NCBI GenBank assembly: GCA_965112735.1
Contig: OZ218952.1
Span: 4,340,001-4,404,000, forward strand
DNA length: 64,000 bases
Direction: 5' to 3'
From: Phaeosaccion multiseriatum
Taxonomy: Eukaryota > Protista > Ochrophyta, other classes
Part shown: positions 35,623 through 63,646 of the stretch, one piece after another
Numbering within the stretch: position 1 is the first letter of the stretch
Layout: each line of letters begins with the position of its first letter
Made by a program: the position numbers and the translations under genes
The notes under the pieces: model-generated
What the model saw: the letters and a program-made list of their open reading frames with translations, nothing else
Told to the model about the DNA's origin: nothing
Databases searched by the model: none

Positions 35623-38020
35623 ATGCATATGGTGAGGTGGTCCGCGATCTTGCTAGTCTTACTTGCGGGTTGCTCCCAGGGAGCGGATGGACAGCAGCAA
35701 CAACAGCATCAGCAGGAGGAAGTGCAGCAACAGGAGTGGCAATACATAGATGGGGAGTGGCTGCCGCTGGATTTGCCGCAGGAAGGGCAGGAGCAGAGGA
35801 GAGAGCTTGGCTTCATCGGGGACAACACGTACCCGTGGGTGGTCAATGGGACTAACATTACTCACCACGACCCCTGGGGCCTGGAGGTTCCCTCGCTCCA
35901 GCCCCACCTCATCAACCTCAGCTGGAACACATCTAACGCGAGGAGTAATGTCACCATCGTGCAGTACAGCAGCAACGACACCGTGTGGACAGTGGGCGTG
36001 AACTCCACGGTCGGCGATTTACGGTTAGATGATCTCAACGTCAGCTCAACCTACTGCATCCGGGTGGCCAGTTTCAACACCTCCATGGGGGACGTGTTGG
36101 AGAACATGATGTTCGAAGAGATGGGGAACTTGACGACATGGTCACCGGCGGAAGACATGTATATTGAAGACACGTACATCGTTGGGAACTGGAGCGACTC
36201 CATCAACAGCACCACTGGTATCTACGGAGGCATGAACGTAACGCTTCATACGTCAGGCAACTTTCTGGGAGAGGATCAGATAGAGGCGTGTGCCACGTAC
36301 ACCGTGGACGTCGCCCTCTGGCCCATCGTTGAGAACCAAACGCAGCAGGGAGGGATGGACGTCGTGCTCATCGTAGATGAGCCAGACTACACATACGGTC
36401 GCTGTGTCTTTGGGCCCACTTTTATTCCCGAGAACTCCACGTGGGGCCAGGAGTTCAACAAGAACTACACCGTCAAGTTCCCAGCGACGTACAACGCCAG
36501 CATCGACACCGAACAAGTGCTAATGTTTCAACAGGCTAGACTGTACTGCTCGCACGAGGCCGAGTTTGGGTACTGGCCCTCCGTCACCGCCGTACACAGC
36601 ACGGGCTCCGCCAACAACTTCACTGGCTTCGAGAGTGGCCACTTTAGGGTGTGGGGCAGAGCCCATGTGGGCGTCCGCCATGGCCAGCCTGAGTACCTCG
36701 ACCTTGGCCTGTGGGACTGCGGCTTCGACTCTGTCGATGGCTTCTACCTCCAGTGGTCATTGTCTAGCAGCGCCCTCTCGTCGGCGGTGAACCGGTTTGG
36801 CCTCGCACAGGGGGAGGAGGAGGACGACGGGGAAGTGGTGCATGTACACGTGGCAGGTAGCGCCTACACGATGGAGGATCTCAATGTCAGCACCGACTAC
36901 TACTTTAGGGCCGCTGGAGAGCACTACAATGAGTGGGACGACTACAACATCGAAGGTGTCAGCTACAATTGGAGCTCCATCGCCTCCAAGACGACAGGTG
37001 AGAAAGTGATGGAGGAAGGGAGGGAGGAAGCGGGGAGAAAGAAGGAAGAGGAAGCGGAGTTGCAGACGATCGGTCTAGGCTCGCTCACCCACTTGCTGCA
37101 GTACCCACTCACCCATGAATTCACTCCCTTATTGGCCTGGCCACATGTGCCCACTCACCCACTCACTCACCCACTCGTTCCGTTTGTTGACGTACTCACT
37201 GTTTGACATGTTGCTTGACACTGCAGGGATTTACGGCAATATGAGCATTTCGCTGGAGAGCACGGGGCTGCGGTTAGGACAGGACCATTTGCCCTCCCTG
37301 CAGGTTCACCCGATTGTCGTCCAGCTGGGGCCAAACTCTACGAAGGAAGGAGGTACGGCAGTACGCACAAACAGAAGAAAAGGGAAGGAGAGGAAGAGAC
37401 TTGTGCGTGTGGGGAGGGTGGGGATAGTGCATGAACGAGCCAGTGCTCCATGTCTCCTATATGTCTCCCTCAACTTTGCTGTCTTTGGTGCGCTCCTTTC
37501 TTTCTTTCTGCGCCCCCCTCCCCTTCCTTTTCCCTGCGAGTACTTTTAACACTTGCACTCACCCTCAACAAACCTCTGCCGATTGATTCGCCCTTTCCCC
37601 CCATTCACACCACACATAGAGCTAGAACAACGATGCGGCTTGAACGTGACTCTGGAACTTGACTTCGATAACGAAGACTACGGCAACTGCGGCCTGTCCC
37701 CCACCGAAAGCATGGACCTCGGGGACTACGAGAAATCGATCATCGTTCAATTCAAGGCCGACAAGGACATGGAGGAGACGGCGTGGCTCTACTGCTGGAC
37801 ACGGACAGACAATCCTGACACACAACCCAACATCACAGTTACAGAGGTGTACGGCACCTCCGTCAACAACTTTACATGTGAGCGATCGATTCGGGTTGGG
37901 GGGGGGAGGGGGGAACAAAGTGTGTGTTCTCTCAGCTTCTTTTGCTTTATTGCCCTTTGGCTTTGAGCCCTCTCGGCCCTCGACAAGGCAATAGTTGACT
38001 CCTTCTAGGAGGTGCATGAT

Positions 38021-38052
<32 letters not shown>

Positions 38053-38584
38053 CTCGCATTCGGCGGGCTGTTGCCGCCTTCTTCGGTTGATGGGAGGCTG
38101 CGTGCTTCCATTCACCTGTTGCTCTTCCTTGCTGTCAAGACTTTCACGCATTCATCCCCTCACCCTTCCCATCCCTTGCCCGGTGATCGAACCTCTCTCT
38201 GCTCTCCACTCTGTTCTCCACTGTGCCCTCCCTGCTCTCCTCTCTCTCCTCTCTTCTCTTTCTTCTATCTGCTCCCTCCTCTCTTCTCTCTCTACTCTCT
38301 ACTGTCCACTCTCCACTCTCCTCTCTCTGCTCTCCCCACTCCCCTTCAGACTGGGTAACGAACCCGTTTCGCGTTCGCAACTTACCCCATGCGCCAAGCA
38401 TGTCCCTAGTGGGGCAACCCGAGTACCTAACGCTGAGATGGGAGGAGGCACCTGACACCACTGACCTGGACGGGTGGCTCGTGTATGCAGACGCAACGGC
38501 CGTTGAGGAAGGACAGGTGAGTGAGGCATGATTTGCGGTCATGCGGCGTGGAAAAGGAAGGCGTGGGCGGGTGGAATAGGGCTG

Positions 38585-38638
<54 letters not shown>

Positions 38639-40197
38639 ACACACACACGCATGTACGCACAGAGAGAAGCAGGGCTGGGTGTACATATGTGCTCAGCGAT
38701 AGGCAGGGAAGAAGGGAAGAAGGGAGTCGAAGCTCTGCGATTCGAGGGGAAGAATTACATACGCTGAAGGAAGGGGCAAGAGGGAGAGTGGAAGGGGAGT
38801 GAAAGTGTTTCCCCCTACTGGTGCTGCTGTATCACCAACTGCTGCTGCCGCTGCTACTCGTGTGGCCCTCTCTGCAGGAGGAGTACATCTACGTGTCCAA
38901 CTCGACAAGCAACATGACCTTCGTTGACATCCTCGAGCACAAGCTAGTGGAGGGCAGCGACTACTCCTTCAAGGTCATGGGGTGGAACAGCGCAGGGGAC
39001 GGCACCTGGGGCAACCTCGATGGCTTCACAGGCATCTACGGACATGTCAACGTGACGCTTAACGAGACCTCTCGCGAGCTCGGATACGATGCCCTACACA
39101 CGCACCTCATTCACAAGGTGGACGTTCAGCTCGTGCCAAATGTGACCGGCTTGACGCAGCGGGGCGGTCTGGACCTTGCGTTGAGTCTTGTCGACACGGA
39201 GTGGGCCAACGGCAACTGCCAGATCGGCATGGATCTTAATATCTCTACGTACCGCGACAGTTACACAGTGGTGCTTCCCGACGGCACCATGAACACAACG
39301 GCCTACATTTACTGCGACAATTGCACCTCCGCCGAGCAGCCGTCCATGTTGGCGATTGAGCAGCTGGGATCCTTTAACAACTTCACGACATTCGCGAGCA
39401 GCTCTTGGCATGTGTTTGGCGTGCCCTGGGTGGACGTGAGGAGTGCCCAACCGGAGTCCATCGTGCTGGAGTGGATCGACCATGGCATTGACGGCGTCGA
39501 TGGATGGCGCGTCGAGTACGCAGAGACGGAAGCAGATCTCGACGGGGTGGAGGGCGTGGACATGTCGGCGCAGTACTCCCCAGACGCTTCCTTTTTGGCA
39601 CTGAGGGGCCTGGACGAGGCAACGGTATACTACACTCGAGTGGCCGGCCACAATGCCGCCATCAGCGGGCACTGGAACTACAGCACCGTCACGACTCAGA
39701 GCACGGGCATCTCCGGCCATCTCAACTTCACCATGGTTAGCACTGGGCGGGAGCCGGGCTTCCAACAACTGGTGGAGGACACCACATACGCGCTGGACTT
39801 GACTCTCCTCCCGACCATTCCGGGCTTGACGCAGGTCGGAGGACTCGAGGTGGACCTTGCGTTTAGCTCCACTAGCGGCGGTTACGGTAGCTGCCGGCTC
39901 AGTCTGAGTGAGTCGAACGGCTTCTCCACAGCTCTTTCGGTGACCTTTGCGGACGATGGGACGATGGAGAAAAGTGTGTACCTCTCGTGTGCTGACATGA
40001 CCAGCGTAGGCCAGCCGATCATCACCGCCACACGTGAGTAAGGGTGGAGCTTGCTTGCTTGCTTGCTTGCTTGCTTGGTGTATGTATGGGTCGTACCGCT
40101 GAAAGAGAGAGAGAGGCAAGCAGGAGCGGGAAAGGAGAGTATAACTGGCCGTTGCGCTGTCTTTTCATGTGTGCGTGGGTGCGTGTGTGTGCGTATG

Positions 40198-40239
<42 letters not shown>

Positions 40240-43200
40240 TGTTCGTGTTGGGGGGTTCGACTTGTCAGCTCAGCCACACCGCATCGCTCATTCAGCTCCT
40301 CACCCCAACGCCCCCTTCCCTCCCCTCCCCACCCCCCTGCCCTTCTGCTCTCTCTCCCCTCCCTGGCAAACAAGACGCGCCTGGCTCTTGGAACAACTTC
40401 ACCTCGTTCTCCACCTCGCCCATCAAGATCAGAGAGGTACCCCTCACGCCCACGGCACTCACGATCGAGCGCGAGCAACCGGACTACATTCGCTTATCCT
40501 GGTTTGACGATCCGGACAGTGATGTTGACGGATGGTATGCGGAAATTGCACTCACCGAGGCCGAGTTCGGTACCGCGTCGAGCAACGTGTCGACCTTGGA
40601 CGCCACTGGAAACCCTCTCGTGAAGTTCGGTGAGTTGGTGGAAGCTTCGACTTACTCGATGAGAGTCAAGGGCTTCAACAACGCCACGGAGGGCGACTGG
40701 AGCTCGGTCATCACGGGTCTGACCGGTGTCTCCGGTTACCTGGAGGTGACTTTGGTGGAGACGGAGACGGAGATTGGGTACGATCGGCTCCTCACTCGCA
40801 CGGCGCACACAGTGGAGGCGAAGCTGATTCCTAACCAGGCAGGGCTTGTGCAGAGCGGCGGACTCAACGTCAGGCTTCGCATCGATGACTCGCACGTATC
40901 GGTGGGGGGTTGCGAGGTGGGCAGCGCCGGTGGGGGAAGCTACGCCGAGACCTACACCCTACCCTTCTCCGCCGAGACGGACAGCATGAGCGAGACATTC
41001 GACGTTTACTGCTCCAACGTCACCCGGCACGGGCAGGGGCAGCCTCGCCTCAGTGCCAAGGAAATTAATGATGGTACTTCACGCAACAACTTCACGGAGT
41101 TTGAGAGTACTTCCTGGCTGGTATACGGAGTGCCGGTCGTGGAGGTGGACAGCGCACAGCCCGACCATGTGCAGCTGTCGTGGATAGACTACGGCATCGA
41201 TGCCAAGGACGGATGGAGGGTGGAGTACGCCTTGGCTGAGGATGACCTCGATGGCTCGGGGGGTGGCACGGTGTGGGACCTCACATCCAGTATTGAAGCC
41301 GCCAAGCTACCAAACTTGGAAGAGGCAACGACGTACTATGCTCGCGTCGCGGGCAAGGACGACACTACACCCAACGCGGCGTGGAACTTCAGCGAGGTGG
41401 TGTCACAAATCACGGGAATCACCGGGCACTTGAACGTTACACTTCTGACCACGGGAGCCGAGGTTGGCGTGCATCAACTGGTGGAGGATGTGGAGTACAC
41501 GATGCAAGTTATTCTCGACCCTACGGACGAGAGCTTGGTGCAGGTGGGCGGGATGTCGGTGGACTTCGCCATCAGTCACACGGGCAGCTACCGGGGACAG
41601 TGTCGCTTCAGCGGCACGAGCGGCTCGGACTTTGCCAGCTCACTGACCACCACCTTCGCGGACGACGGGAGCATGCTGGAGACGGCATACTTGAAGTGCA
41701 ACTCGAAGTCCACTGCTTCGCCCACTGTCGAGCTGACGCATCAGATGGGCTCTCTTAACAACTTCACCTCCTTCACCTCGCCCGACATCATCGTGAGAAG
41801 CGTGCCCAACACTCCCACGGGGCTGACGGTGGTGCATGAGCAGCCCGGTTATCTGAACCTCGAGTGGGACGAGGACACCGACAGCGACACCGACGGATTG
41901 TATGCGGAGATTGCGGAAACGGAGGCGGAGTTCGGCACCGGTACAAGCACCACCATCATTGTCAGTAGCGGATCTACCTCCGTCACCTTCGACGGGCTGG
42001 AGCAAAGTACCGCCTACTCGATGAGAGTGAAGGGATACAACGCCGCCACGGACGGCAGCTGGAGCTCTGTCATCACGGGTCACACGGGTATTGTGGGCGC
42101 CCTCAATGTAACACTCACCGACACGACGAGGGAGCTGGGTGAAGACGCCATTCACACGCGCCAGACGAAGGAGATTGTGGTGGTGCTGGAGCCTGAAGAC
42201 ACTTCTCTGACGCAAATTGGCGGACTCGACGTGCTGCTCACCATTGTGGGAAATGAGGAGGAGAATGGGCTCTGCGTCCTGGGCGGAGCCGGCAGTAGCA
42301 GTAGTAGCAGTAGTGCCTTTGAGAGCTATGGCAACAACCACACAGTGGTGTTCGCTGACGACTCGAGCATGGCGGAGGCGGCATTCATGTACTGCTACAA
42401 CGTCACCAGCGGCGCCCAGCCCTACATCATTGCGAGTGAAGTGTTTGACACGTCAAGCAACAACTTCTCCACATTTACCAGCGGCTCTTGGCATGTGTAC
42501 GGCGTGCCCAACGCCGAGGTGACCGCAGGGCAGCCGAGTTATCTCGTGACGGAGTGGGTGGACTACGGCAGTGACGCCGTCGACGGCTGGCGGATAGAGT
42601 ATTCTACCTCGCAGGCCACGCTGGAGGCGGACGGAGGAGCCTTTGTGACGTCTGACGCGCGGCTCAGGAGGCTACCCGGGTTGGATGAAGGGACCGTCTA
42701 CTATGCTCGAGTGGCGGGGCACAACGACGCCATCGGTGGGCACTGGAACTGGAGTGACATTGTGTCTTCCCAGACCGGCATCAGCGGCACCGTCAACCTC
42801 TCTCTGGCGAGCACAGGGGACGGGCTGGGCACACAGCAACTGGTGGAGGACACGGAGTATGAAGTGACCGTTACGCTCCAGCCCGACAATAACGGCATGA
42901 CGCAGATTGGGGGCCTATCGCTGGAGTTGGACTTGTCGAGCACAGCCGATGCCTACGGAAACTGCCGCCTGAGCTCCACTTCGGGTGCCTCCTACTCCAG
43001 CTCCGTCACGCTTGCCTACGCGAGCGACGGAACCATGGAGGCGACCGCGTACTTCATTTGCGACGAGTGGACCACCACAGGGGAGCCCACCGTCACCGCG
43101 ACGGAGCAGCTGGGCTCGTACAACAACTTCACTTCCTTCACCACTCCCTCCATTCGAGTCAGGAAGGTACCCAACACGCCCACGGGTCTGTTGTCGGATC

Positions 43201-46200
43201 ATGAGCAGCCTGACTACATCGATTTGGTATGGAATGAGGACGCCAGCAGCGATATTGACGGATGGTATGCGGAGATTGCGGAAACCGAGGCGGAGTTCGA
43301 TACCGTGACCAGTACGGTGATGACAGTTGCCCCGGCTAGTACGGCTGTGAGGTTCGACAGCCTCGACGAGGATACCACATATAAGATGAGAGTGAAGGGA
43401 TACAATGCGGCCACGGAGGGCAGCTGGAGCTCTGTCATCACCGGTCAGACGGGTATCTTTGGACATCTTAGCGTGCTTCTGGACGAAACGTCGCTCGAGC
43501 TCGGAGAGGACACGCTGCATACAGAGCAACATCACAAGATCGACGTGCTGCTCGTCCCGGACACGGAGTCCCTCACTCAGTCGGGGGGGCTGGAGGTCAG
43601 CCTGACCATCGAAGAGCCGGACTGGTCCTACGGAGGCTGCATGGTCGGACCTGGAAGCTCTGCCTCTTACGCCGACGAGTACTCAGTCACCTTCGCGGAC
43701 AGCGGCTCTCCGATGGCCCTCACCGCCTTTGTGTACTGCACCAACGCCACCTCCGTAGGAAGGCCCACCCTCGTCGCCAGGGAGGTGTTTGGCTCCTCTC
43801 GCAACAACTTCACCTCCTTCGAGAGCGGCTCATGGCACGTGTACGGCGTGCCGGTGGTGAATGTCACAGGGGCACAGCCTTCGTCCGTCTCGCTGGATTG
43901 GGTCGACCACGGTATTGACGCCGTCGATGGATGGCGCATCGAGTACGCAGAGACCGAGGCAGCACTGGAGGGGACGGAGGGCGTGGACATGGAAGCCGTG
44001 TTGGCTACGTCACACCCTGCGTCAGTGAGGGGCCTGCAGGAAGACACAACCTACTACATGCGTGTGGCCGGGCACAGCGATGCCATTGGTGGGCACTGGA
44101 ACTACAGCAGCGTGGTGTCTCAGCAGACGGGCATCACTGGTCACCTCAACCTCACTCTCGTCGGCACGGGTGCCGAGCTTGGGGTGGACCAGCTCGTGGA
44201 GGATACCCAATACCCGCTGTCGCTGACCCTCGAGCCCAACGACCCCTCAGCCACGCAAAATGGGGGCTACTCCGTTGTGGTGACCGTGGATGAGTCGAGC
44301 AACGACGGCGGCTGTGGGCTTCGCCTCAGCTCGGGATCGGGCTCCTACGCAACGGCAGTGACAGTCACCTACGCGGACGACGGCACCATGGAGGAGACGC
44401 TGTACATGCTCTGCACGGATAAGACAGGGGCTGGCAGCGGGAGACCCACTATTGCGACCACAGGTGGGTGGGTTGCATTGAGTGGAGTCACGGGCTGAGC
44501 AAGCCACCCCGCCCTCCATCGCATCCTCTTTCTCTTTCTGTTGCTCCCTCCTCCCACTCTCTGCCCCTCTATCTGCTCTCTCTATGTGTGTGTCTCTCTC
44601 CCTTCCCCCCCATCTCTCTCTCTTTCCCTTTTGCGCTTGCTCTCATACTCTGCTGTCTCACTCCCTTCCTCTCACTCTACCGACACTCTCTACCCTCTCG
44701 CTTTATACCTCTCGCCTTGACGCTTTGGCGTTTCAACCTCACAGGGGTGATTGGCTCATGGAACAACTTCACTGAGTATGTCACAACTGCCATTCGTGTC
44801 AGAGAGGTGCCGCTGACGCCCACGGGTCTGTTGTCGGATCATGAGCAGCCGACCTACATCAAGCTTGTGTGGGATGAGGATGCCAGCAGCGATATTGACG
44901 GATGGTATGCGGAGATTGCGGAGACCGAGGCAGAGTTCGATACCGTGACCAGTACGGTGATGACGGTGGCCGCGGCTATTACGGCTGTGAGGTTCGACAG
45001 CCTCGACGAGGACACCACATATAAGATGAGAGTGAAGGGATACAATGCAGTCACGGAGGGCAGCTGGAGCTCTGTCATCACCGGTCAGACCGGAATTCAG
45101 GGGCATCTTAGCGTGCTTCTGGACGAAACGTCGCTCGAGCTCGGAGAGGACACGCTGCATACAGAGCAACATCACAAGATCGACGTGCTGCTCGTCCCGG
45201 ACACGGAGTCCCTCACTCAGTCGGGGGGGCTGGAGGTCAGCCTGACCATCGAAGAGCCGGACTGGTCCTACGGAGGCTGTATGGTCGGACCTGGAAGCTA
45301 TGCCTCTTACGCCGACGAGTACTCAGTCACCTTCGCGGACAGCGGCTCTCCGATGGCCCTCACCGCCTTTGTGTACTGCACCAACGCCACCTCCGTAGGA
45401 AGGCCCACCCTCGTCGCCAGGGAGGTGTTAGGCTCCTCTCGCAACAACTTCACCTCCTTCGAGAGCGGCTCATGGCACGTGTACGGCGTGCCGGTGGTGA
45501 ATGTCACAGGGGCACAGCCTTCGTCCGTCTCGCTGGATTGGGTCGACCACGGTATTGACGCCGTCGATGGATGGCGCATCGAGTACGCAGAGACCGAGGC
45601 AGGACTGGAGGGGACGGAGGGCGTGGACATGGAAGCCGTGTTGGCCACGTCACACCCTGCGTCAGTGAGGGGCCTACAGGAAGACACAACCTACTACATG
45701 CGTGTGGCCGGGCACAGCGATGCCATTGGCGGGCACTGGAACTACAGCAGCGTGGTGTCTCAGCAGACGGGCATCACTGGTCACCTCAACCTCACTCTCG
45801 TCGGCACGGGTGCCGGGCTTGGGGTGGACCAGCTCGTGGAGGATACCCAATACCCGCTGTCGCTGACCCTCGAGCCCAACGACCCCTCAGCCACGCAAAA
45901 TGGGGGCTACTCCGTTGTGGTGACCGTGGATGAGTCGAGCAACGACGGCGGCTGTGGGCTTCGCCTCAGCTCGGGATCGGGCTCCTACGCAACGGCAGTG
46001 ACAGTCACCTACGCGGACGACGGCACCATGGAGGAGACGCTGTACATGCTCTGCACGGATAAGACAGGGGCTGGCAGCGGGAGACCCACTATTGCGACCA
46101 CAGGTGGGTGGGTTGCATTGAGTGGAGTGGGCTCAGTGGAATGGCGCTCTCTGTTCCTGTCTTTCGATGTCCCTCCATGGCTTCCTCTCTGTTCACTCTC

Positions 46201-50970: not shown

Positions 50971-51003
<33 letters not shown>

Positions 51004-54000
51004 CCTGCCTGTCTGGCTATCTCTGTGTCTGTTGAGGACACTGGTCCTTCATTCACATGCGAGTCTTTTTGATGGCATATTGGACTGACCTCTTCCTCCC
51101 CTTTCGGCCCTCCTACCCCCCACCCCACCCTTCAACACCAACTATAACTACAATATCAATTCAAATTGACTGGCCAGGTTGGAGGCATGGAGGTGACCCT
51201 GTCCCTCGACGAGCTCGGCAAGACATACGGAGAGTGCGGCCTCTCCGCCTCGCAGGATGGCTCCTACGCCTCCTCAGTGACGTTGTCCTTCCCCATGCCC
51301 TCGATGGAGGAGACAGCCTATCTGCGCTGCGAGAACGTTACGTCCGCGTCCGACGGCGGCCCGAGGGTTTCGGCCGTGGAGGTGCTGGATGTCGGCTCAG
51401 TCAACAACTTCACCTCATACACTAGGTGAGTCGTAGGATGGCGGTGGGTGGGTGGGGGTGGGGTGGGTGGATGGGCGGATGTCTGGGTGTGTGTGTGGGT
51501 GTGTGGGTGGGTGTGTAGGTGGCTGGGTGCCTGTGGGTGGGTGCGTGGTCAGGTGGGTGGGTTGGTGGTGGGTACTTACTCCTGTACTCCTGCCCTGAAG
51601 TCAACTCGACGAGTCTCTGCCTTTCGCTTCTCTCCCTCCTCTCACGCTCATCGTCGCACTCGTTCCCCCTCGTTTCGGATGTTCCGCGGCTGCCTTGTTC
51701 CATGCCCGTGTCCCCTTCCGTGCGTGCGTGTGTGCGTGTGTGCGTGTGCGTGTGTCTCCCACCGCAGCCCTCCAATCGAGCTCTACGATTACCCTGCTCC
51801 GCCCGAGCTGCACGTGGTGTGGGGTCAGCCTGACTACCTCTCTCTCGAATGGTCCGATCAGTACAAGCACATCATCGACGGTTGGATCGTCATGTACTCG
51901 GAATCACAGTTGGCGCTCGAGGAGACTCCCTTTTGGGCACCGGCGGAGAGTATGGTGGGCGTGTCTCCTAACCTCACTAAGGTGTTCAGTATCAACGCCT
52001 CGGACAGCAGCGCCACTCTGCGAGGACTCAACGAGTCGACAGTGTATTACATTCGCGCCGCTGCGCATAACATTGATGTAGTGGGCAATTGGAGTGAGAC
52101 CATATCGACTTCGACAGGTGTGTGTGTGTGCGTGGTGTGTGCGTGTGTGTGTGCGTGTGTGTGTGTGCGTTTGTGTGTGTGTTTTTGTGTGTTTTGTTGT
52201 GTGTATACGTATTTGTGTTTGCGCCTGTGCCTCTCTCTCTGGCGTTTCTCTTGTGGTGTGCGTGTGTGCGTGTGTGTGTATGTGTGCACGAGGAAGCTTA
52301 CGCACACGAGGGCATCTCTCAGCCCCCCCTCCCCTCCCCTCCCCTTCCTCTCCCCTCCCTCTCCCCTGTCCTCACCAGGCATCACCGGGCAGCTACAACT
52401 CACAACATCGGGAGCGCTAACGGGCGAGGAGCAGGAGCTCGGCAGCGGGGACTATGGGATGAGTGTGACGTACCCTGTGAGCCTACTTCTCACCCCCTCC
52501 AACAGCGACATCACCCGCTTTGGTGGTCTGCAAGTCGATGTCGCGGTGGAGGAGACAGGAAGCAGCTTCGGCGGCTGCCAGGTGGGACTGGAGGCATCTT
52601 CGCTCGCCAGCAGCGTCACGGTGAGCTTCGCCGCGAATGAGACGAACATGGAGGACGAACTCTACATGCGCTGCTCCTCACGCACCAGCGGAACGGACTT
52701 CCCGACCCTCACCGCCACGCAGGTGAGTGTGTGTGGGTCACCATGTGTGTGTGCGCGCGTGCATGCATAACGAATTCCTACCTGTCTGCCTGCCTGCCTA
52801 CCTACCTGCCGGCCTGCCTGCCGGTTTGCCTGCCTGCCGGTCTGCCTGCCTGCCTGTCTGCCTGCCTTCCCACTCCCACTGCCCGTCTGCGTGTCTGTAT
52901 TTCTCAATACTTAGCCCCCAGCTGTCGTCGCTCCCCTCGCAGATTCCCTCCGATACCTCGTTCAACAACTTCACAACCTTCGAGTCCGATCGCTTCCGAG
53001 TGCGCGGAGTGCCCCTCCTTCCGCTCAACGTGTCCTTCACGCGAGTGCAGCCTGAGTCCACGGCGCTGGAGTGGGCTTTTGACGATGTCGCCTTCAGCTC
53101 TGTCGACCTCGATGGCTGGGAGCTTGAGCTCGACGACGCCAACACCACCGCCTACTTGGACACAGATACCGACACGGATAGCGTCACTGGAGTCATCTAC
53201 TCCTTTGATAACATCACCACCGCCGCCACGCTCAGCGGTCTAAATCAGTCCACCACTTACGTTGTGAGGGTCCGAGGAGCGAACAGTGCGACGGTCGGCG
53301 GTTGGTCGAGTCCCGTCAATAGGACTACGGGAGTATCGGGTTATCTCAATGTGACTCTGTCGGAGGAGGGCGTGGAGATCGGCGCTATCGATCTCGCCTC
53401 ACTGCTGGTCTACGACGTTGATGTGGAGCTCATTCCCGACGTGCCAGGCTTGGAGCAAGTAGGTGGGGTGGAGGTGCTCTTGGCGCTGACCACCAACGCC
53501 ACGACGGCCGATCGCTGCTCGTGCTTCATCCGCGAGGGAGACGGGTGGGAGTACGGTTCTGGTGTGGCAGCCTGGGGAAATGAGGTGGTACTGAACATCA
53601 CCACGGAGGCACTCATGGAGGTGCCCAACGCGATCCAAGTGCAGTGCACCAACTGCACACAGGGGGAGATTGAGGGCGTAAGTCTCCGTGCCACCGAGGT
53701 GATGGTTCCCAACAGTGACAACTCATACGCCAACTTCAACAACTTCTCGACCTTCTCCAGCGCCGCCTTTGGCTGCTACGTGGCCCCCGAGACCATCACG
53801 GGGGTGTCTGGCGAGTCCCCTCCGGCGCTAATCAGTGCCATGAATGTGTCCTGGGAGGCACCGACTTTGCCTGCGGTCATCTCCTCGTACTTCATCCACT
53901 GGGAACGAGTGGACAATACTACCACCACCAACGAGGTCTTATCGTCGGGCAACTACACCGTCTCCGCTAGTATGGTGGGTGGCGACACGACAGTAGCAGA

Positions 54001-55059
54001 CGGTAGGCTGTTTGCCACGGTGCCTGACCTCATGACTGGCTCCTTCTACACCTTCACCGTCACGGCCATCAATGATGCGGGTTCAAGCCCAGCAAGCACC
54101 GCCTCAGGTTCGTTCGTCGCATCCCTCCCTCGCTTCCCGCTCCCATGCCTGTGTGCGCGTCGCTCACATAAGGAAGAAATGTCCGCTCTTGTTCCTTTCT
54201 TATCGCCTCTTTTCAATCCAAGACCTACCTTTCATCGCGGTCCTGTCTCTGGTGCTGCTGCTTCCCTCATCTCTCTCCATGGGGTCACTCTCTCTCCCTC
54301 TCTGTTCGTGCGTGTGTGTGCGCGCTTTTTCCTACTTTCCTTTCCTTCCCTTCCCTTCCCTTCCCTTCCCTTCCCTTCCCTTCCCTTCCCTGCCCCTTCT
54401 CTCTCTCATCTCACCAGAGTCTGCCCCCGTGCAGCCGGGCACACTCAGCGCGACTATCCGTCTGCACAATTCGCAGCCCGAAAGCATCACCACCAACGCC
54501 ACTCTCAGCATTACGCCGCTCCACTCGGTGCCTGCCCAGGGCTACCTGTACGTACAACTGCCCGTCGAGTTCGGCGGGCTGCATGACCGCTGCTCTGTGC
54601 TGGAGCAATCCTTCGGAAACGTCAATACAAGGTACGCGAAGGCAGTGAAAAAAAAATACACACACTCACACACTCAACGCAGCCTGGGTTGTTACTGCTG
54701 TGCTGCAAGGTTGATTCGGTAGCACCGCCTTGCCACAGACCGTAGTGTGGTTTTATCACCACCTTCAAACCCCCCCCTTTATCCTCACACACTGACTTGC
54801 TTATACTTTTCCATCTCCCTCCTCCTCTCTCTGTCCGTGAATTGCCACCCGTCATCCTTTTGCCCCCCCCCCGTGTGCCTCAGCCTTATGACCATGAACT
54901 GCACGAGCTCGTCCATGGAGATGCTCTTGTCGGTGGGCTCGTCGGGTGAGTTTCAGTTTCAGTCTCTGTGCGGCCCTTATTCACCCATCCCTCTCTCTCT
55001 TCACTCGCTCTCTCTCTCACTCTCCGTGCCACTCACTCTCTTCGTCCCTTTCTGTCTCT

Positions 55060-55106
<47 letters not shown>

Positions 55107-55858
55107 TTGCTTTTCCTCTCTCTCTCTAGGTATCGAAGAGGACCTGCCAGCCGGAGAGACCATCACACTGAAACTCTCCGGAATCGTGACCCCATACCCA
55201 GTGGGTATCACGTCAGGTGGGTTGAGTGGTGAATGGATGGGTGTGTGGGTGTGTGGGTGGGTGGGTGGGGAGAAGGCATGCCGCCGCTTTTGCCTTGGCC
55301 CCCACTGACTCCCTCCATACGACACCTGCTTGCTGTCCGACTGCCCTCCCCCCCCCCCCCCCAAACCCTATTAAAAGCCGTCCGTGCTGTCAAGACACTG
55401 GAGGCAGCCGCGGACGGCATGCTCTCTCGAGACGAGGCCTCTTCCGCCTACCACTCAGACACACTGCCTCAAGGCTTTGACATCTGGATCAGTCCGGTAA
55501 AGCCTGTCATGAGTCTCGCCTGGGGCCAGCCTGAGTACCTGTACTACGATTGGGACGATGAAGTCCTCGAGGACGTGGCAGAGGGATGGGTGCTCCACAT
55601 GTCGGATTCATGGCTGGCGCTGACGGAGATGCCCACTTTCTTCGCCCCAGCTAGGACCACCGTCATGACGAGCGGTGTCGGTAGTATCAACGCGACGGTG
55701 TACGCGTTCAACATTTCGGACAGCGAATTGCTGGCGCAGGGGCTGAATGTGTCCACGCCGTACTTTGCCCGAGTGGCCGGGTATAACTCGCATGGGCATG
55801 GAGAATGGAGCAACATCCTTACCGCCTCCACCGGTGCGTGTGCGTGTGTGTGTGTGTC

Positions 55859-55908
<50 letters not shown>

Positions 55909-58900
55909 TGTGTGTGTGTGTGTGTATTCACTACTCATACCCCTCGTACCGCCTTCAACAACATAGAGTATGACTTCGTTCACTCATTCTCCTCCTACCC
56001 GATGATGGCCTTGTCGTCTGACCTCGCCTCGATCTCCCTTCACTCACTCTGCGACCCCTTCGCCGTTCCACATGCACCACACACTACACACACACCCACA
56101 CCCACACACACACCCACACACACACACACACACACATCACACATACACTCGTACGTACACACGTACGTACACGCGCACACATACAGGTATCTACGGGCAC
56201 TTAAACCTCACCACAGAGGGAAGCGAGCTGGGCAGTCAGGACTACGTGCTTAACACCCTGTACGCAGTCACTCTTCTAATGGATCCGGCACAGAGCGACA
56301 TGCCTCGCACTGGGGGGCTGGACGTGGAGGTGACCGTGGAGGACACAGACAGCAGCTTCGGCGGCTGTGAGGTGGGACGGGGTGCCTCTTCGCTCGCCAG
56401 CAGCGTCACGGTGAGCTTCGCCGCGAATGACACGAACATGGAGGACGAACTCTACATGCGGTGCTCCTCACGCACCAGTGGAACGGACTTCCCGACCCTC
56501 ACCGCCACGCAGGTGAGTGTGTGTGGGTCCCCATGTGTGTGTGCGCACGTGAACTACCCGCCTGCCTGCCTGCCTGCCTACCTGCCTGCCTGCCTGTCTT
56601 TTACACCTCTACGCTTCCCTCCCTCCCCTCCCCGCCCCGTCTCTGCCCTCGCAGGTTCCCTCCGATACCTCGTTCAACAACTTCACAACCTTCGAGTCCG
56701 ATCGCTTCCGAGTGCGCGGAGTGCCCCTCCTTCCGCTCAACGTGTCCTTCACGCGAGTGCAGCCGAAGTTCGCGGCGCTGGAGTGGGCCCTCAACGAAAC
56801 AGTCTTCAGCTCCGTCGACCTCGATGGCTGGGAGCTTGAGCTCGACGACGCCAACACCACCGCCTACTTGGACACAGACACCGACACGGATAGCGTCACT
56901 GGAGTCATCTACTCCTTTGATAACATCACCACCGCCGCCACGCTCAGCGGTCTGAATCAGTCCACCACTTACGTTGTGAGGGTCCGAGGAGCGAACAGTG
57001 CGACGGTCGGCGGTTGGTCGAGCCCCGTCAACAGGACTACGGGAGTATCGGGCTATCTCAATGTGACTCTGTCGGAGGAGGGCGTGGAGATCGGCGCTAT
57101 CGATCTCGCCTCACTGCTGGTCTACGACGTTGATGTGGAGCTCATTCCCGACGTGCCAGGCTTGGAGCAAGTAGGTGGGGTGGAGGTGCTCTTGGCGCTG
57201 ACCACCAACGCCACGACGGCCGATCGCTGCTCGTGCTTCATCCGCGAGGGGGATGGGTGGGAGTACGGCTACGGTGCGGCGACATGGGGCAATGAGGTGA
57301 TGTTGAACATCACCACGGACGGAGTCATGGAGGTGTCAAACGCCATCGAAGTGCAGTGCACCAACTGCACGCAGGGGGAGATTGATGGCATTAGTTTGCG
57401 TGCCACCGAGGTGTCTCTGAGCAGCGACAATTCACACTCCAACTACAACAACTTTACGGCCTTCTCCGGCGCCGCATTTGGCTGCTACAATCCCCCGGAG
57501 GAGATTAGTGGCATTGTTGGCGAGTCCCCTCCGCCCTACTTGAGCTCCGCCGTTGTTCAATGGCACGCGCCGGTTCTGCCCGCGGTCATTGACTTCTACA
57601 CCGTGAAGTGGGATAGAGTGGTCAACGGCTCGTGGCGTGACGTCATCGCCTCAGGTTCGTAACACCCTGTATACTCCTCCCATCTCTCTTTGGTGTGTCT
57701 CCTGACACTCTGCACCCCTCCTCCTCCTCCTCCTCCTCCTCCTCCTCCTCCTCCTCCTCCTCCTCCCCCTCCTCCTCCTCAGGCACCTTCAATGTCTCTG
57801 CCGCCGACGTCCGCACCACCTTTGATGAGGTCGTTGCCGATCGACTCCTTGCCAGTAGCAACAGGAGCACGGTGTATACCACTGTGCCCGATCTGGTGAC
57901 GAAGGCGTCATACGTGTTCCGCGTGACAGCCACCAACGATGCGGGAGAAAGTCCCACGCGCGACCCCACGGGTACGACTGCGGCAGTAATTTTAGTCTTA
58001 GTTTAGTAGGTGTTAGTTAGTAGGAGGTGTCAGGTCTCAGGGGGGGAGTTGGGACGAAACGTTGACGATTCCCCTCCTCTTCTCTCCTCCCCTTGCCTCC
58101 CCTTGCCTCCCCAAACGAAAACAAAGACGAGGATGTGGTGACCGTCACGCCCGGCACTATCGTCGCCAGCATGGAGCTGGAGGACCACTCCCCCCTGGTC
58201 AACACGACACTCACCCTACACGTGGAGGCTCTGCACGCCATCCCCTCTGACGGATTCATCATTCTGCAGTTACCGGAGGAGTTTAGTGCTCTCTATCCGT
58301 CGTGCCAAGTCATGGAACAGTCCTTGGGATCCACTGCCACTGCCCTATTGAGTGCCGAATGCGACTCCGAAAAGCTCGAAGTGGTCTTCTCCGTCGCCTC
58401 TGCAGGCTTGGCTGGGGACATCCCGGCAGGCACTTCGGTCTCCATCAAGCTCTCCGGAGTAAAGAACCCCCCCCTGGAGGGCCACACCTCAGCCTTTCGG
58501 GGGCTGGAAACCTTTGAGAGTAACGGCAATGTAACCGTCGACGAAGCCTCGCCCTCCATCAACGCGGACGGTATGCCTGATCCCATGTACATCTTCTATA
58601 CTCCTAGCCCACCCGACCTCGCCTTCACCCTCCGGCAGCCAGAGATGCTCGCCCTGGACTGGGACGACGAGGCCATGGACGTTGTGGACAAGTGGGTCGT
58701 CCAGGTGGCCCAATCGCAACAGGCGCTGGAAGACGCAACTGGCCTGTTCGACTTCATCGCCGTTGACGACGAGGGCGACTTTGCCGGCCTGGATGTGAGT
58801 TCGACCGCCGTGTACGGGCGCAATGTGACCGACAGTCGGGTCAGCTTTCACGGCCTCCAGCCAGCGACTGAGTACTTCATTCGGGTGGCCGGGTGGAATG

Positions 58901-61900
58901 CGTTTATGCATGGCAACTGGAGCGACATCGCCTCTACTTCCACAGGTCTGTTCTTCTTGATATGTTCGCTCATTGCTTCTTTGGTTCGTTCGCTCGTTCG
59001 TTCCTTTGGTTCGTCGGTGTTCGCTCGTTTGTTCGCTTCATCGGTCGTTCGTGTCTCTGTCTCGGGGTCTTTGCGTTTGTGTCTCTGTGTGTGTGTATGG
59101 TTGTCCACCTCGCCTCGTTCTTACCCTATGATATGTCGTTGCTACGCTTTTGTCTCCCTCCCTCCCTCCCTTCCCTCCCTCCCTCCCTTCCCTCCCTCCC
59201 TCCCTCCCTCCCTCCCTCCCTCCCTCCCTCCCTCCCTCCCTCCCTCCCTCCCTCCCTCCCTCCCTCCCTCCCTCCCTCCCTCCCTCCCTCCCTCCCTCCC
59301 TCCCTCCCTCCCTCCCTCCCTCCCTCCCTCCCTCCCTCCCTCCCTCCCTCCCCCCTCCCTCCCTCCCTCCCTCCCTCCCTCCCTCCCTCCGCTCTCCTGA
59401 CCACCCCAACAGGTATCTACGGACACCTCAGTCTCAGCATGCCCGCAATGGGCGGAGAGGAGCTCGGTCAATCCGATTACCTCCTGGACACGACCTACGC
59501 TGTCCACCTAGTCCTGACACCTAGCAGCAGCAGTGAGGCAGAGGAGGTGAGGGTAGGAGGGCTGGACGTGGTGGTGACCGTGGAGGAGACAGACAGCAGC
59601 TTCGGCGGCTGTGAGGTGGGGCTGGAGGCTTCTTCGCTCGCCAGCAGCGCCTCGGTGAACTTTGCCGCCAGTGAGACGAGCATGGAGGACGAGATCTACA
59701 TGCGGTGCTCCTCACGCACCAGTGGGGCAGATTTTCCGACCCTCACCGCCACGCAGGTTGTGGCCGTGAACTCCTCCAACAACTTCACGGCCTTCTCCTC
59801 GGATTCCTTCCGAGTGCGTGGTGTACCTGCGTTACCCCTCAACGCGGCCATTCCGCGCATTCAGCCCGACTTTATGCGTGTGGACTGGGACGCAGACACC
59901 GTCACCGCCTTCAACGACGTTGACACAGACGCGTGGGAGGTGCAGCTCACCACCACCACTACCACCACCACCACCACCACCACCAGCAGTAGTACTAGCG
60001 AGGTGGTGGTAGTCTACGCCGTCGCCAACCACACCACAGAGCTTACCATGGAGGGGCTGGACCAAGAGACGACCTATGTTACGAGGGTTCGTGGGGTGAA
60101 CTCGGCCACGGAGGGTGACTGGACCGATGCCCTTGAGCGAACCACGGGGGTGTCGGGGGCACTGACGGTTACGGTTGCGAGGGACGATCGGACGCTAGGG
60201 TACGATGTTGGGGCCCATGTGGAGTACGCATTGGATGTGAAGCTCTTGCCCTCGAGTGGCGGGGTGGATTTGGCGCAAGTGGGTGGGGTGGAGCTTCTGC
60301 TCGCACTCACTACGGACCCTGCCACGGCGGATGAGTGCCAGTGTTTTATCCAAGCAGGGTCGGGCGGTGGAAGTAGTTGGGGTCAGGAGGTGACGCTGAG
60401 TGTCACGGAGGGAGGCGTGATGGAGGTGTCCGAGGCGGCGTGGCTGCGGTGCTCGGAGTGTACCAATGGAGACATTGATGGCATTACCGTGCGAGCCACA
60501 GAGATGATGCGAGCCAGCGACAACAACGATCCCGACCAGGGGCAGGCGCAGTTCAACTCCAACAACTTCACGACCTTCCAGAGTGACGCTTTCGGCTGCT
60601 ATCTCGTCGCACCTCAGCCGACCGGGGTGCTGGCTGTGTCTCCCTCTTCCTTACTCAATGCCATGAACGTGTCCTGGGACGATCAAACCTCCCTCGATGT
60701 CGTCGTCCATGAGTATCTCCTTCGCTATGACGAGGTGGATGATGGCGACTTGGAAACCATCGCCGCGTCGGGCAACTTGACCATCCCGCTTGAGGATGTG
60801 AGCACAGACGCTGCGGCCGGCAAGGTATTCACCATCGTGCCGGGTCTTGACAATACAAAGTCGTACATCTTTAGCGTCTCTGCCGTCAATGACGCAGGAG
60901 AGAGCGACCCCTCTGTCCCGGCAGGTGAGACTGAGAAGGAGACTTAGAAGAGGTTTGATGTGTCTGTCCATGTATCCATCCATTGCCTTCCATCCATCCA
61001 TCTCTTCTTCACATCCGTTTTGTCTCTTGGTCTGACTCTCTGTCTCCTGCCTACCCCATTCGCCCTCTCCCTCCCTCCCTCCCTCCCTCCCTCCCTCCCT
61101 CCCTCCCTCCCTCCCTCCCACCCTTCCTCCCTCCCTCCCTCCCTCCCTCCCTCCCTCCCTCCCTCCCTCCTTCCCTCCCTCCCTCCCTCTCACACACGCA
61201 CACACCCACAACACGTCAACACACAGACCTGTCCGCGGTTGTCCCTGGCGAGCTGGAAACTTCCGTCTTCCTTGGCGACCTCACCGCTGGAGTCACCACC
61301 ACCGCAGAGGTCTCCCTCACGCCATCCGCAGACATCCCGAGGGACGGTCAGATCTACCTGCAGTTCCCCTACGGCTTCAGCCTCGATGAAGAAGCGTGTG
61401 ATTTGACCGTGGCTTCCATTGCGACGGACCCGCCCATTGACTTCAGCGGCGCCACCATCATCTGCAACGCCACGGAGGCCTCCGTCACCATCGACCTCGA
61501 AGATGCAGGTGCGTGCGTGAGTGCGTGAGTGCCTGTTTGAGTGTCGAGACCCCTCTCCCCCTCCCCCCCCGGGTGTGCGCTGCACTTACGAGTTTCTTGT
61601 TGTCTTCCTTCCTTCTTTCCTCTACATGTAGTTACGTTACTCTCTCCTTCTCTCCCTCTCTCGCTCCCCTCTTCTCCTTCTCGCTATCTCTCTCTGTCTG
61701 TGTCTCTCCCTCCTTCCCTCCGTCCGTCCGTCCGTCCGTCCCTCCCTCCCTCCCTCCCTACCCCCCTCGCCCCTTCATCCCGTACCCCCCCCCCCCTCCC
61801 TCCCTCCTCTCTGTTCCTGTGACGCAGGTCTGACGGAGGACATCCCTGGGGGTATCGAACTCTCCTTCGAGGTGTGGGGTGTGCAGACTCCGAATCAGGA

Positions 61901-62669
61901 CGGGACAAGCGAATGTAAGTCGAGCTCCTCGACTCCAAGAATCGATGTTCCCAACTCTCCACATCGCTCTACAGAAACCGTTTCTTCTTCTTCTTCTTCT
62001 TCTTCTTCTTCTTCTTCTTCTTCTTCTTCTTCTTCTTCTTCTTCTTCTTCTTCTTCTTCTTCTTCTTCTTCTTCTTCTTCTTCTTCTTCTTCTTCTTCTT
62101 CTTCTTCTTCTTCTTCTTCTTCTTCTTCTTCTTCTTCTTCTTCTTCTTCTTCTTCTTCTTCTTCTTCTTCTTCTTTTTCTTCTTCTTCTTCTTCTTCTTC
62201 TTCTTCTTCTTCTTCTTCTTCTTCTTCCGATGCCCTTACTGCTCGTTTGTTTTATTCATTGTCCCTCTCTGCTCCCTCTCACCATCTCTCTCTGTCTCAC
62301 AAACACACTCTCTCTCTCTCTTCTCTTCTCTCTCTCGCAGCGTTCCGGGCCGTCAAGACGCTTACGAAAGACGGGCAGCCCCTCTGCATGTCCTCGATCG
62401 ACTGGCACGAGGAGGACTTACCGGCCGGAGACGGCTACTATATTGAGAAGGGTGAGTGAATGACCAAGAGCGGTAGGGAGGGGCTCTAGTCGGTGAGGAG
62501 GGAAGCCGCGCTCAGTACCATAATACACCGCCGTCCACAGGGAGCTTGTCTGCTTACAGACCTACTGACTCCCCTTCTCCCCTACGATGCGTGATCCCTT
62601 CCACCCACCCACCCACCCATTCATTCCACCGACTGGAACGAACGAATGGACACACACACACGCACGCAT

Positions 62670-62719
<50 letters not shown>

Positions 62720-63646
62720 TCAAACAAACACGCACACACACACGCACACACACACACACACACTCGCGCGCGCAAACACGCCCGCACATGAGCAGAAGGG
62801 GACGATACGGTGACGATCATCGTTATTACCACCATGGCGGGGGGCAGTAGCTGCTGCTGTTGGTTCGTCTTCTGCTGCTGGCGCCGCCGGAAGGACAAGA
62901 AGAGGAGGAGGCGCCCAGACCCAGAAGAGACCAATCTAGACGAGGTGAGTGAGTGCACGAAGGAGTGAGTGAGTGAGTGCCCGAAGGAGTGAGTGAGTGA
63001 GTGAGTGAGTGAGTGAGTGAGTGAGTGAGTGAGTGAGTGAGTGAGTGAGTGAGTGAGTGAGTGAGTGAGTGAGTGAGTGAGTGGATGAGTGAGTAAGCGA
63101 GTGAGTGAGTGAGTGAGTGAGTGAGTGAGTGAGTGAGTGAGTGAGTGAGTGAGTGAGTGAGTGAGTGCGTGCGTGAGTGAGTGCGTGCGTGAGTGAGTGA
63201 GTGAGTGAGTGAGTGAGTGAGGGAGTGAGTGAGTGAGTAAGTGAGTGAGTGAGTGAGTGAGTGAAACGAAACGTTGTAAGTTGGCCATGCAGAAGGGTGC
63301 CATCGCTATAGAGGAGAACACTGCCATGTGGTGCCATCGCTATAGAGGCAAACACTGCCATGTGGTGCCATCGCTATAGAGGAAAACACTGCCATGTGCG
63401 CCCCCTCCCACACGTTTCTCGAGGCCATGGTTCGTTTGTTGAATGCCTCCTGTGCGCCTCTCGCACCCACTGATGGCTTCTTCTTCTTCTTCACCACCTC
63501 CTCACTCCTCTCCCTCCCTCTCTCCCTCCCTCGGACTGCTGATGCTCTGCCTGCAGGATCACGAAACCGTGGCGGCATCAGCATGTCACCCCCAGGAGCT
63601 TTCACTGCCCATTCCCTCGTCCCCGAGCCACCTTCCACACCGGAGG
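35623..63646 (+). CDS. Giant type-I membrane glycoprotein: about 27 FN3 domains, about 24 two-Cys 'NNFT' modules, 3 Ig-like modules, TM helix and a cytoplasmic tail that probably continues beyond the window (about 28 exons)
   Basis: Signal peptide [22 protein letters not shown]3 motifs (P..PTGL..QP.YI.L.W...DGL.E.T.Y.MRVKGYN...G.WS). Phase-compatible GT-AG junctions link all exons. TM exon 62796-62944 reads [35 protein letters not shown]. Confidence 0.85.
43150..49870 (+). repeat. Tandem exon+intron duplication, 4 units of about 1.64-1.68 kb plus the start of a fifth
   Basis: Equivalent positions recur at 43667, 45307, 46953 and 48631 (periods 1640, 1646, 1678). Exons near-identical. Confidence 0.92.
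52550..57270 (+). repeat. Second internal duplication, about 52550-53560 vs about 56340-57270
   Basis: Near-identical exon sequence and intron start (gtgagtgtgtgtgggtc) about 3.7-3.8 kb apart. Confidence 0.85.
59155..59390 (+). repeat. (CCCT)n intronic microsatellite
   Basis: About 235-bp pure pyrimidine tract upstream of the acceptor at 59412. Confidence 0.95.
61982..62227 (+). repeat. (TTC)n intronic microsatellite, about 80 units
   Basis: Directly visible, with one interruption. Confidence 0.95.
62945..63263 (+). repeat. (GTGA)n intronic microsatellite starting at the donor site
   Basis: Directly visible. Confidence 0.95.
63297..63398. repeat. Minisatellite, 3 x 34 bp (gtgccatcgctatagaggagaacactgccatgtg)
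   Basis: Contiguous copies at 63297, 63331 and 63365 with 1-2 substitutions. Confidence 0.9.

Follow-up and report, generated by a model that had tools for sequence, protein, structure and literature searches.

Giant surface proteins of tandem beta-sandwich domains

The closest described system, by analogy of function and architecture, is FMG1B of Chlamydomonas, a membrane-anchored chain of 34 immunoglobulin-like (Ig-like) repeats of ~110 amino acids (aa), in each of which a Cys pair is conserved at positions 60 and 91 (PMC12021028). FMG1B carries N-glycans and makes up the outer coat of the cilium; cells lacking FMG1A and FMG1B adhere more, and the authors of the study speak of a new class of mucin-like proteins (PMC12021028). 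The gene described here lies in the window G000:C3:4340001-4404000, i.e. the whole 64-kb stretch of Phaeosaccion multiseriatum DNA that was analysed (host genome of 67 Mb in 22 contigs), and its modelled product consists of fibronectin type III (FN3) domains interspersed with 24 copies of a ~130-aa module that is concluded below to represent a new sequence family. The explanation favoured for this locus, to which a probability of roughly 55% is assigned, is that of an intact giant gene whose membrane-anchored product forms a glycosylated rod in the cell-surface or flagellar glycocalyx.

Several features are shared with FMG1B and FMG1A (PDB 9GOS). First, these proteins are, as the window protein would be, giant algal membrane-anchored semi-rigid chains of dozens of Ig-like repeats, and the window protein is likewise predicted to carry many Ig-like repeats with a conserved Cys pair in each (positions 60/91 in FMG1, 64/97 in the window module). 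Second, both are N- rather than O-glycosylated, as predicted from sequons in the case of the window protein. Third, both are devoid of a catalytic domain and occur as paralogous isoforms. In contrast, the FMG1 repeats of ~110 aa display ~22% mutual identity and are not interleaved with FN3, whereas the window modules of ~130 aa are FN3-interleaved; also, the window protein possesses FN3 domains and a further domain, X, unlike FMG1. The likeness is one of function and architecture, no sequence link having been found.

Usherin-type FN3-rich giants are, as is generally known, giant single-pass type I proteins with a short tail too. However, half of the chain of the window protein consists of a non-FN3 module, and laminin, EGF and LamG domains are absent.

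Gene model

The coding region was reconstructed by listing the GT-AG pairs that keep the frame from one confident coding block to the next, each junction being checked against the module profile and a paralogue:

35623..62968, + strand: complete coding region in 27 exons, with 26 GT-AG introns (128-472 nt), closing in frame with a single terminal stop

Local scripts only were applied to the joined spliced protein (frame closure, domain counts, hydropathy), and single-exon references were used for database searches and fold predictions. The spliced coding sequence of 19,908 nt corresponds to 6,635 aa, in agreement with the ~6,600 aa that a first-pass annotation had given, and to ~711 kDa unglycosylated with a pI of 4.1. 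An in-frame stop occurs one codon upstream of the start ATG (35623), and the stop codon is located at 62966-62968, so that the end of the interval had been set 680 nt too far downstream (63646), positions 62969-63646 being noncoding in the model. No further coding exon of the gene was seen in the latter region, where either strand offers only open frames of low complexity; a 3' untranslated region is possible.

A rival explanation divides the region into at least two neighbouring genes, or regards the array as pseudogenised in part. Weak splice scores at two junctions, 37353/37620 and 57972/58127, where the boundaries may shift by a few codons, speak for it, as does the search of JGI metagenome contigs with an exon-junction 34-mer as a proxy for cDNA, which returned 0 matches. 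Against it, the 27 exons are joined in frame via GT-AG introns (19 of the 26 in phase 1), the model has neither a stop nor a signal peptide nor a transmembrane (TM) segment in its interior, and a paralogue on contig C11 keeps the identical order from start to TM helix. Moreover, the ratio of nonsynonymous to synonymous substitution rates (dN/dS) is well below 1 between repeated cassettes. Hence, this rival is judged highly improbable. The reading as one intact gene for a type I membrane protein of 6,635 residues is considered strongly supported, since the frame stays unbroken across the 26 canonical introns and the gene lines up with the C11 paralogue all the way from the signal peptide to the TM helix. 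On the sequence, the earlier proposal of a single gene thus appears correct, the model having one TM-like peak only.

The symmetric phase-1 exon pattern is usually tied to exon shuffling in animal extracellular proteins. Nine introns share one location within the module, near profile position 110-115, directly before the NNF strand. The window has a GC content of ~58-60% and contains spliceosomal introns and many microsatellites. Intron 25 (61990-62240) includes a very long CTT/TCT microsatellite that reads as poly-S, poly-L or poly-F across the three frames, and introns 22 and 23 (59150-59400 and 61040-61200) contain CCCTCC-type repeats reading as (SLPP)n. In these three introns, the repeats produce long spurious reading frames, which run over or prolong real exons.

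Domain architecture

The layout of the model is signal peptide, Q/E-rich stretch, (FN3-M)x20, FN3'-X1, (FN3-M)x2, FN3'-X2, (FN3-M)x2, FN3'-X3, TM helix and tail, where M stands for the module. This amounts to ~54 domains without linkers between them (27 FN3, 24 modules and 3 X), as expected from the earlier estimate of 50 or more beta-sandwich domains. The strict alternation of FN3 and module that had been proposed holds for the first 20 pairs; it breaks down at the C-terminal end, in the quarter of the chain nearest to the membrane, where an extra FN3 and an X follow M20, M22 and M24. The termini, the first FN3 and the extra FN3 copies are as follows:

35623..35685, + strand: signal peptide (translation; cleavage site approximate)
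35836..36213, + strand: first, divergent FN3 (Pfam fn3 E 1.2e-4 and own FN3 profile)
53780..54107, + strand: FN3' after M20 (Pfam fn3 E 5.4e-11)
57489..57971, + strand: FN3' after M22, with intron 57655-57782 inside (Pfam fn3 on the second half; alignment)
60603..60924, + strand: FN3' after M24 (Pfam fn3, residues 589-677 of exon 58893-60944)
62810..62881, + strand: TM helix, 24 aa, with a five-Cys cluster at its cytoplasmic end (Kyte-Doolittle; 80% conserved in the C11 paralogue)
62882..62968, + strand: cytoplasmic tail, 29 aa (polybasic, then PDPEET...DEVSE), and stop codon (motif conserved in the C11 paralogue)

The N-terminus before the first FN3 is a Q/E-rich stretch without a recognised head domain. 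The single TM-like hydropathy peak (residues 6584-6607) is the only place in the whole model where a 19-residue window has a Kyte-Doolittle mean of at least 1.6. The signal peptide, the TM helix and a basic stop-transfer sequence (a stretch of 11 residues) had all been predicted and were all retrieved.

The assignment of the intervening domains to FN3 was confirmed by Pfam (PF00041). Indeed, the open frame 40338-44495 (1,386 aa) matched fn3 in five stretches (E 1.6e-43, 147 bits) and four other exons matched as well, with scores of 63.9 bits for cassette exon 7 and of 49.6 and 43 bits for C-terminal pieces, the gathering score being 25 bits. A few copies stayed just under that score (the first FN3, 55380-55901 and 58117-58950), so that all 27 FN3 domains pass or approach the threshold. 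No TIG domain (PF01833) was found in any window exon scanned against Pfam.

A hidden Markov model (HMM) of the module was built from the five complete units of the open frame 40338-44495. It retrieved 33 pieces, all on the + strand (36214-60527), which assemble into 24 modules, 15 of them intact and nine split by introns, spanning 36214-60602; the profile found none elsewhere in the window or on the - strand. The count is the one given by the first-pass annotation, and in the joined model all 24 modules match the profile from position 1 to 133 or 134:

36214..36657, + strand: M1 (HMM 146 bits, profile 1-134)
37227..38366, + strand: M2, with introns 37353-37619 and 37878-38349 inside (HMM, splice model)
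39028..39420, + strand: M3 (HMM 170 bits)
39703..40421, + strand: M4, with phase-1 intron 40034-40374 inside (HMM, splice model)
40375..44463, + strand: exon 6, 1,363 codons, with the end of M4, M5-M9, most of M10 and six FN3 (translation, Pfam, HMM)
40722..41129, + strand: M5 (HMM)
41412..41798, + strand: M6 (HMM)
42084..42503, + strand: M7 (HMM)
42774..43163, + strand: M8 (HMM)
43449..43847, + strand: M9 (HMM)
44127..44794, + strand: M10, split by a phase-1 intron (HMM)
45089..45487, + strand: M11 (HMM)
45767..46434, + strand: M12, split by a phase-1 intron (HMM)
46735..47133, + strand: M13 (HMM)
47413..48112, + strand: M14, split by a phase-1 intron (HMM)
48413..48811, + strand: M15 (HMM)
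49091..49769, + strand: M16, split by a phase-1 intron (HMM)
50112..50534, + strand: M17 (HMM 165 bits)
50811..51425, + strand: M18, with phase-0 intron 50943-51177 inside (HMM, splice model)
52379..53008, + strand: M19, with intron 52723-52942 inside (HMM, splice model)
53327..53779, + strand: M20 (HMM 144 bits)
56187..56720, + strand: M21, with intron 56513-56654 inside (HMM, splice model)
57039..57488, + strand: M22 (HMM 146 bits)
59413..59822, + strand: M23 (HMM 126 bits)
60144..60602, + strand: M24 (HMM 130 bits)

The module starts with TG[IV]xG, which marks the joint with the preceding FN3, and ends with NNF[TS]xFxS, of which NNF[TS] lies in the last strand. As had been claimed for the NF[TS] sequon, NNF[TS] is present in 24 of the 24 spliced modules. 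Residues G2, G5, G19, C64, C97, N119 and N120 are invariant or occur in at least 90% of the rows, both in a 13-copy alignment and in a 24-copy alignment with paralogues. The claim of two Cys per copy is borne out as far as C64 and C97 are concerned, which are conserved in 90-100% of the aligned copies from all three paralogues, but several modules contain three or five Cys instead. Of the 76 Cys of the model, 60 are found in modules, two in each X and five at the cytoplasmic end of the TM helix.

In addition, M3-M18 alternate between two subtypes, with a mean identity of 57% within and 36% between subtypes. Since the FN3 domains alternate too, the true period is a four-domain super-repeat.

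Assignment of the module

With Pfam, the module gave no match at E<=10, and no family reached an E value of 0.01 on any of 13 copies. Similarly, the module profile matched nothing among PDB sequences below E 0.1, the only matches at E<=10 being M157 and a DSCAM. An AlphaFold2 (AF2) prediction from 13 paralogous rows yielded a ten-strand beta-sandwich, with a predicted local distance difference test score (pLDDT) of 88.6 and a predicted template modelling score (pTM) of 0.84 for the best model, and this predicted fold is considered moderately secure. Foldseek of this model against the PDB gave no match at E<=1e-3, and structure searches with the module returned generic beta-sandwich matches only. 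Further searches were equally blank: a word search with the 1,386-aa exon gave nothing at E<=1e-3, for which a length filter and low-complexity candidates were probably responsible; the ESM Atlas held no usable match to one module; an FN3-M-FN3 query found no relative in JGI metagenomes; and nothing relevant was found in the literature on FN3 proteins of haptophytes or stramenopiles. A diverged FN3 was tried as a candidate as well and was rejected, as hhalign aligned only 8 boundary residues.

Under an alternative explanation, the module would belong, in strongly diverged form, to a beta-sandwich family that is already described, the candidates being Calx-beta, cohesin-like, CARDB/DUF11 and the FMG1 'beta chunk repeat'. 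The last of these likewise has a conserved Cys pair, ~31 residues apart. The module does not qualify as Calx-beta (PF03160), the marks of which are a Pfam profile match and the acidic Ca2+-binding loop residues, nor as a cohesin or cohesin-like module, marked by a Pfam profile match and a nine-stranded jelly-roll that pairs with a dockerin. The repeat families of bacterial Ig-repeat adhesins and S-layer proteins (SbsC, intimin/invasin Big, cohesin-like, Calx-beta) are prokaryotic or unrelated; they are 5-17% identical to the module, without a Pfam match or the conserved disulphide pair, and their structural scores fall in the range that the tool calls a common arrangement. Membership of a described family is regarded as distinctly unlikely, and it is concluded that the module combines a generic Ig-like sandwich fold with a new sequence family. 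This accords with the view of the first-pass annotation that the module could not be assigned, as Pfam and PDB-sequence searches were blank, hhalign gave no link to FN3 and structure matches were generic; its suggestion of an undescribed family holds as far as the searched databases reach.

Relatives in public sequence data

A 24-row module profile was searched with HMMER against 1.84e9 representative proteins (E<=1e-3). Ten proteins were found, of which nine are credible relatives, all of them unnamed ENA or Logan environmental sequences. No green-algal protein was among the matches, and no protein of the host genome either, the proteome of which is evidently absent from the library searched; close relatives that are unsequenced or unannotated could escape the search in like manner. 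Eight of the relatives are short fragments in which the module adjoins FN3, and at least P0002 and P0003 run at one end into an apparent translated intron, which suggests that they stem from eukaryotic genomic contigs. The tenth protein, P0008, a bacterial tandem-repeat protein presumably of DUF11-like type, was rejected as a relative, its partial match to profile positions 54-99 (8.6 bits per repeat) being at chance level.

The only large true relative, P0001 (3,015 aa), is encoded on a 514-kb contig of an ENA metagenome assembly and is apparently intron-free over its 3,015 codons. It contains five FN3-module pairs, FN3'-X and then at least 11 Cys-containing IPT/TIG domains. P0001 shares with the window gene the M-FN3'-X order of the membrane-proximal unit and the conservation of both Cys, but differs from it in having IPT/TIG domains where the window gene has the TM helix, and in lacking the NNF[TS] sequon (NDFT, SAFT). 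More generally, the distant relatives retain the two Cys, the initial TGxxG and N-[ND]-F. As the Ser/Thr of the sequon is not retained in relatives, the NNF motif is structural, glycosylation at this site being lineage-specific at best; the motif probably belongs to the last strand, which packs against the FN3 that follows.

Cassettes and paralogues

Part of the array consists of near-identical units:

43105..49719, + strand: four tandem cassettes U0-U3, ~1,640 bp each, containing M9-M16 (exon/intron identity, dN/dS)

Each cassette comprises the last strand of one module, an FN3, a module, an FN3, most of the next module and an intron. The exons are 92-98% identical and the introns 52-69%; dN/dS amounts to 0.17-0.36 and the synonymous rate (dS) to 0.05-0.19. 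Together, these exon and intron identities and dN/dS values indicate that the cassettes are constrained coding sequence, with purifying selection on their exons, and not very recent copies. Both ends of each cassette exon fall within the last strand of a module and in phase 1, so that a whole hybrid module would be restored if a cassette were duplicated, deleted or skipped.

A search of the genome with the module profile revealed two further loci:

G000:C11:1046000-1066000, - strand: C11 paralogue, 14 modules and 2 X, collinear with the window gene from signal peptide/start codon to TM helix and tail
G000:C14:1247700-1254100, - strand: C14 paralogue, 6 modules and then X (module profile)

The TM end and tail of the C11 paralogue are ~80% identical to those of the window gene, and the four near-identical cassettes of the latter are absent from it. 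The C14 paralogue has four modules in near-identical FN3-module cassettes of ~1 kb, three scoring an identical 139.7 bits and the fourth 139.5, and its X is in a single open frame; a TM end of this paralogue was not found.

Domain X

Domain X is a second domain without a family match, ~155 aa long with two Cys, which follows the FN3' after M20, M22 and M24:

54418..55480, + strand: X1, four exons, 54418-54631, 54884-54945, 55130-55216 and 55378 onward (alignment with X2, X3 and the X region of P0001; junctions)
58127..58599, + strand: X2, the sole X copy in a single exon (translation; Pfam blank over the X2 part)
61227..62451, + strand: X3, three exons, 61227-61508, 61828-61914 and 62341-62451 (splice model, alignment)

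In the host genome, domain X is confined to the three paralogues. An AF2 prediction of X2 from a two-row alignment was unusable (pLDDT 39.7), and a word search for X relatives with residues 1000-1290 of P0001 was swamped by bacterial FN3 matches and hence uninformative for X. In an ESM Atlas feature search with X2, the nearest entries were unnamed hypothetical-protein clusters of ciliates and perkinsids (score 0.97); as no more than a lead, these may hint at a wider protist domain.

Proposed function

A role as adhesin, coat or receptor had been raised as a possibility by the first-pass annotation. A structural surface rod is favoured over a receptor or an enzyme because of the lack of any recognisable head domain for ligand binding or catalysis, the linker-less joints, the acidic and sequon-rich surface and the short conserved tail with its polybasic stretch and Cys cluster. 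An extracellular character of the chain is supported by the signal peptide, by the Cys pairs of the modules and of X and by an excess of sequons. The model contains 144 N-x-S/T sequons versus ~55 expected from its composition, a 2.6-fold excess, and they recur at module positions 8 (15 of 24), 99 (13 of 24) and 120 (24 of 24). C64 and C97 would form a disulphide within each module. The protein may hence be pictured as a stiff, acidic rod with many N-glycans. FN3 and Ig domains have a length of ~3.5-4.5 nm; at ~4 nm each, the 54 domains would give a rod of roughly 200 nm. Such a rod would most likely be part of the cell-surface or flagellar glycocalyx, where it would provide a protective layer, regulate adhesion and set spacing. 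Its length might be tuned through the phase-1 exon cassettes and through the paralogues (24, 14 and 6 modules), which would share one conserved membrane-proximal base. The conserved tail and Cys cluster may serve in sorting or anchoring, perhaps via palmitoylation.

The main rival to a coat function is that of an adhesin, in which the rod would present binding surfaces for substrate attachment, for cell-cell or gamete recognition, or for the capture of prey or particles. On that reading, the protein would be closer to the giant Ig-repeat adhesins of bacteria or to the FN3/Ig cell-adhesion molecules of animals than to a passive coat, and a role of this kind is equally compatible with a repetitive beta-sandwich rod. 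However, no distinct N-terminal or tip domain of the lectin, integrin-ligand or other binding type is present, the strongly acidic, heavily sequon-rich surface favours repulsion, and the repeat protein of the best-studied algal analogue lowers adhesion (PMC12021028). An adhesin is deemed rather unlikely.

Besides the equal fit of an adhesin, several observations count against the favoured explanation. First, the comparison with FMG1B is an analogy, and no FMG1B chain was matched by the module profile among PDB sequences at E<=10. Second, FMG1 carries a Cys-rich domain, a conserved ~100-aa disordered linker and a multi-helix membrane domain, whereas in the window protein X3 leads up to one TM helix without a linker. 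Third, the fold of the module rests on 13 paralogous rows, the other four AF2 models having a pLDDT of 58-68. Fourth, relatives such as P0002 (NDFE) and P0003 (NKFE) lack the Ser/Thr of the sequon. Lastly, the blank search with the exon-junction 34-mer belongs here as well.

A broader proposal is put forward tentatively, the odds being somewhat against it. The NNF module and X would constitute a new pair of extracellular domains, restricted to one poorly sampled lineage of marine protists, and would build, together with FN3, membrane-anchored ~200-nm rods of an N-glycan-rich, mucin-like coat of cell or flagellum. The origin of this coat would be independent of both the FMG1 coat of green algae and the mucins of animals, and the length of the rods would be set by phase-1 cassettes via gene duplication or exon skipping.

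Implications

The overall anatomy of the window gene is essentially as first described, that of a real and intact gene, with corrections to the stop, the alternation and the Cys number and with the subtypes added. The protein is rated here as a new domain family within a known kind, the giant tandem beta-sandwich surface glycoproteins. If it is only another repetitive surface protein, its value is limited to annotation; the module and X are two domain families missing from Pfam and could be used to annotate a few related environmental sequences. Hardly anything is known in molecular terms of the surface coats of non-model algae, which govern how the cells adhere, aggregate and sink, how they are grazed, how viruses attach to them and how gametes recognise each other; the window gene offers a concrete, very large candidate component of such a coat. 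If its role parallels that of FMG1B, disulphide-braced, N-glycosylated chains of Ig-like repeats would be a recurrent algal route to a mucin-like layer, and symmetric phase-1 cassettes would be a simple genetic means to tune the thickness of the coat.

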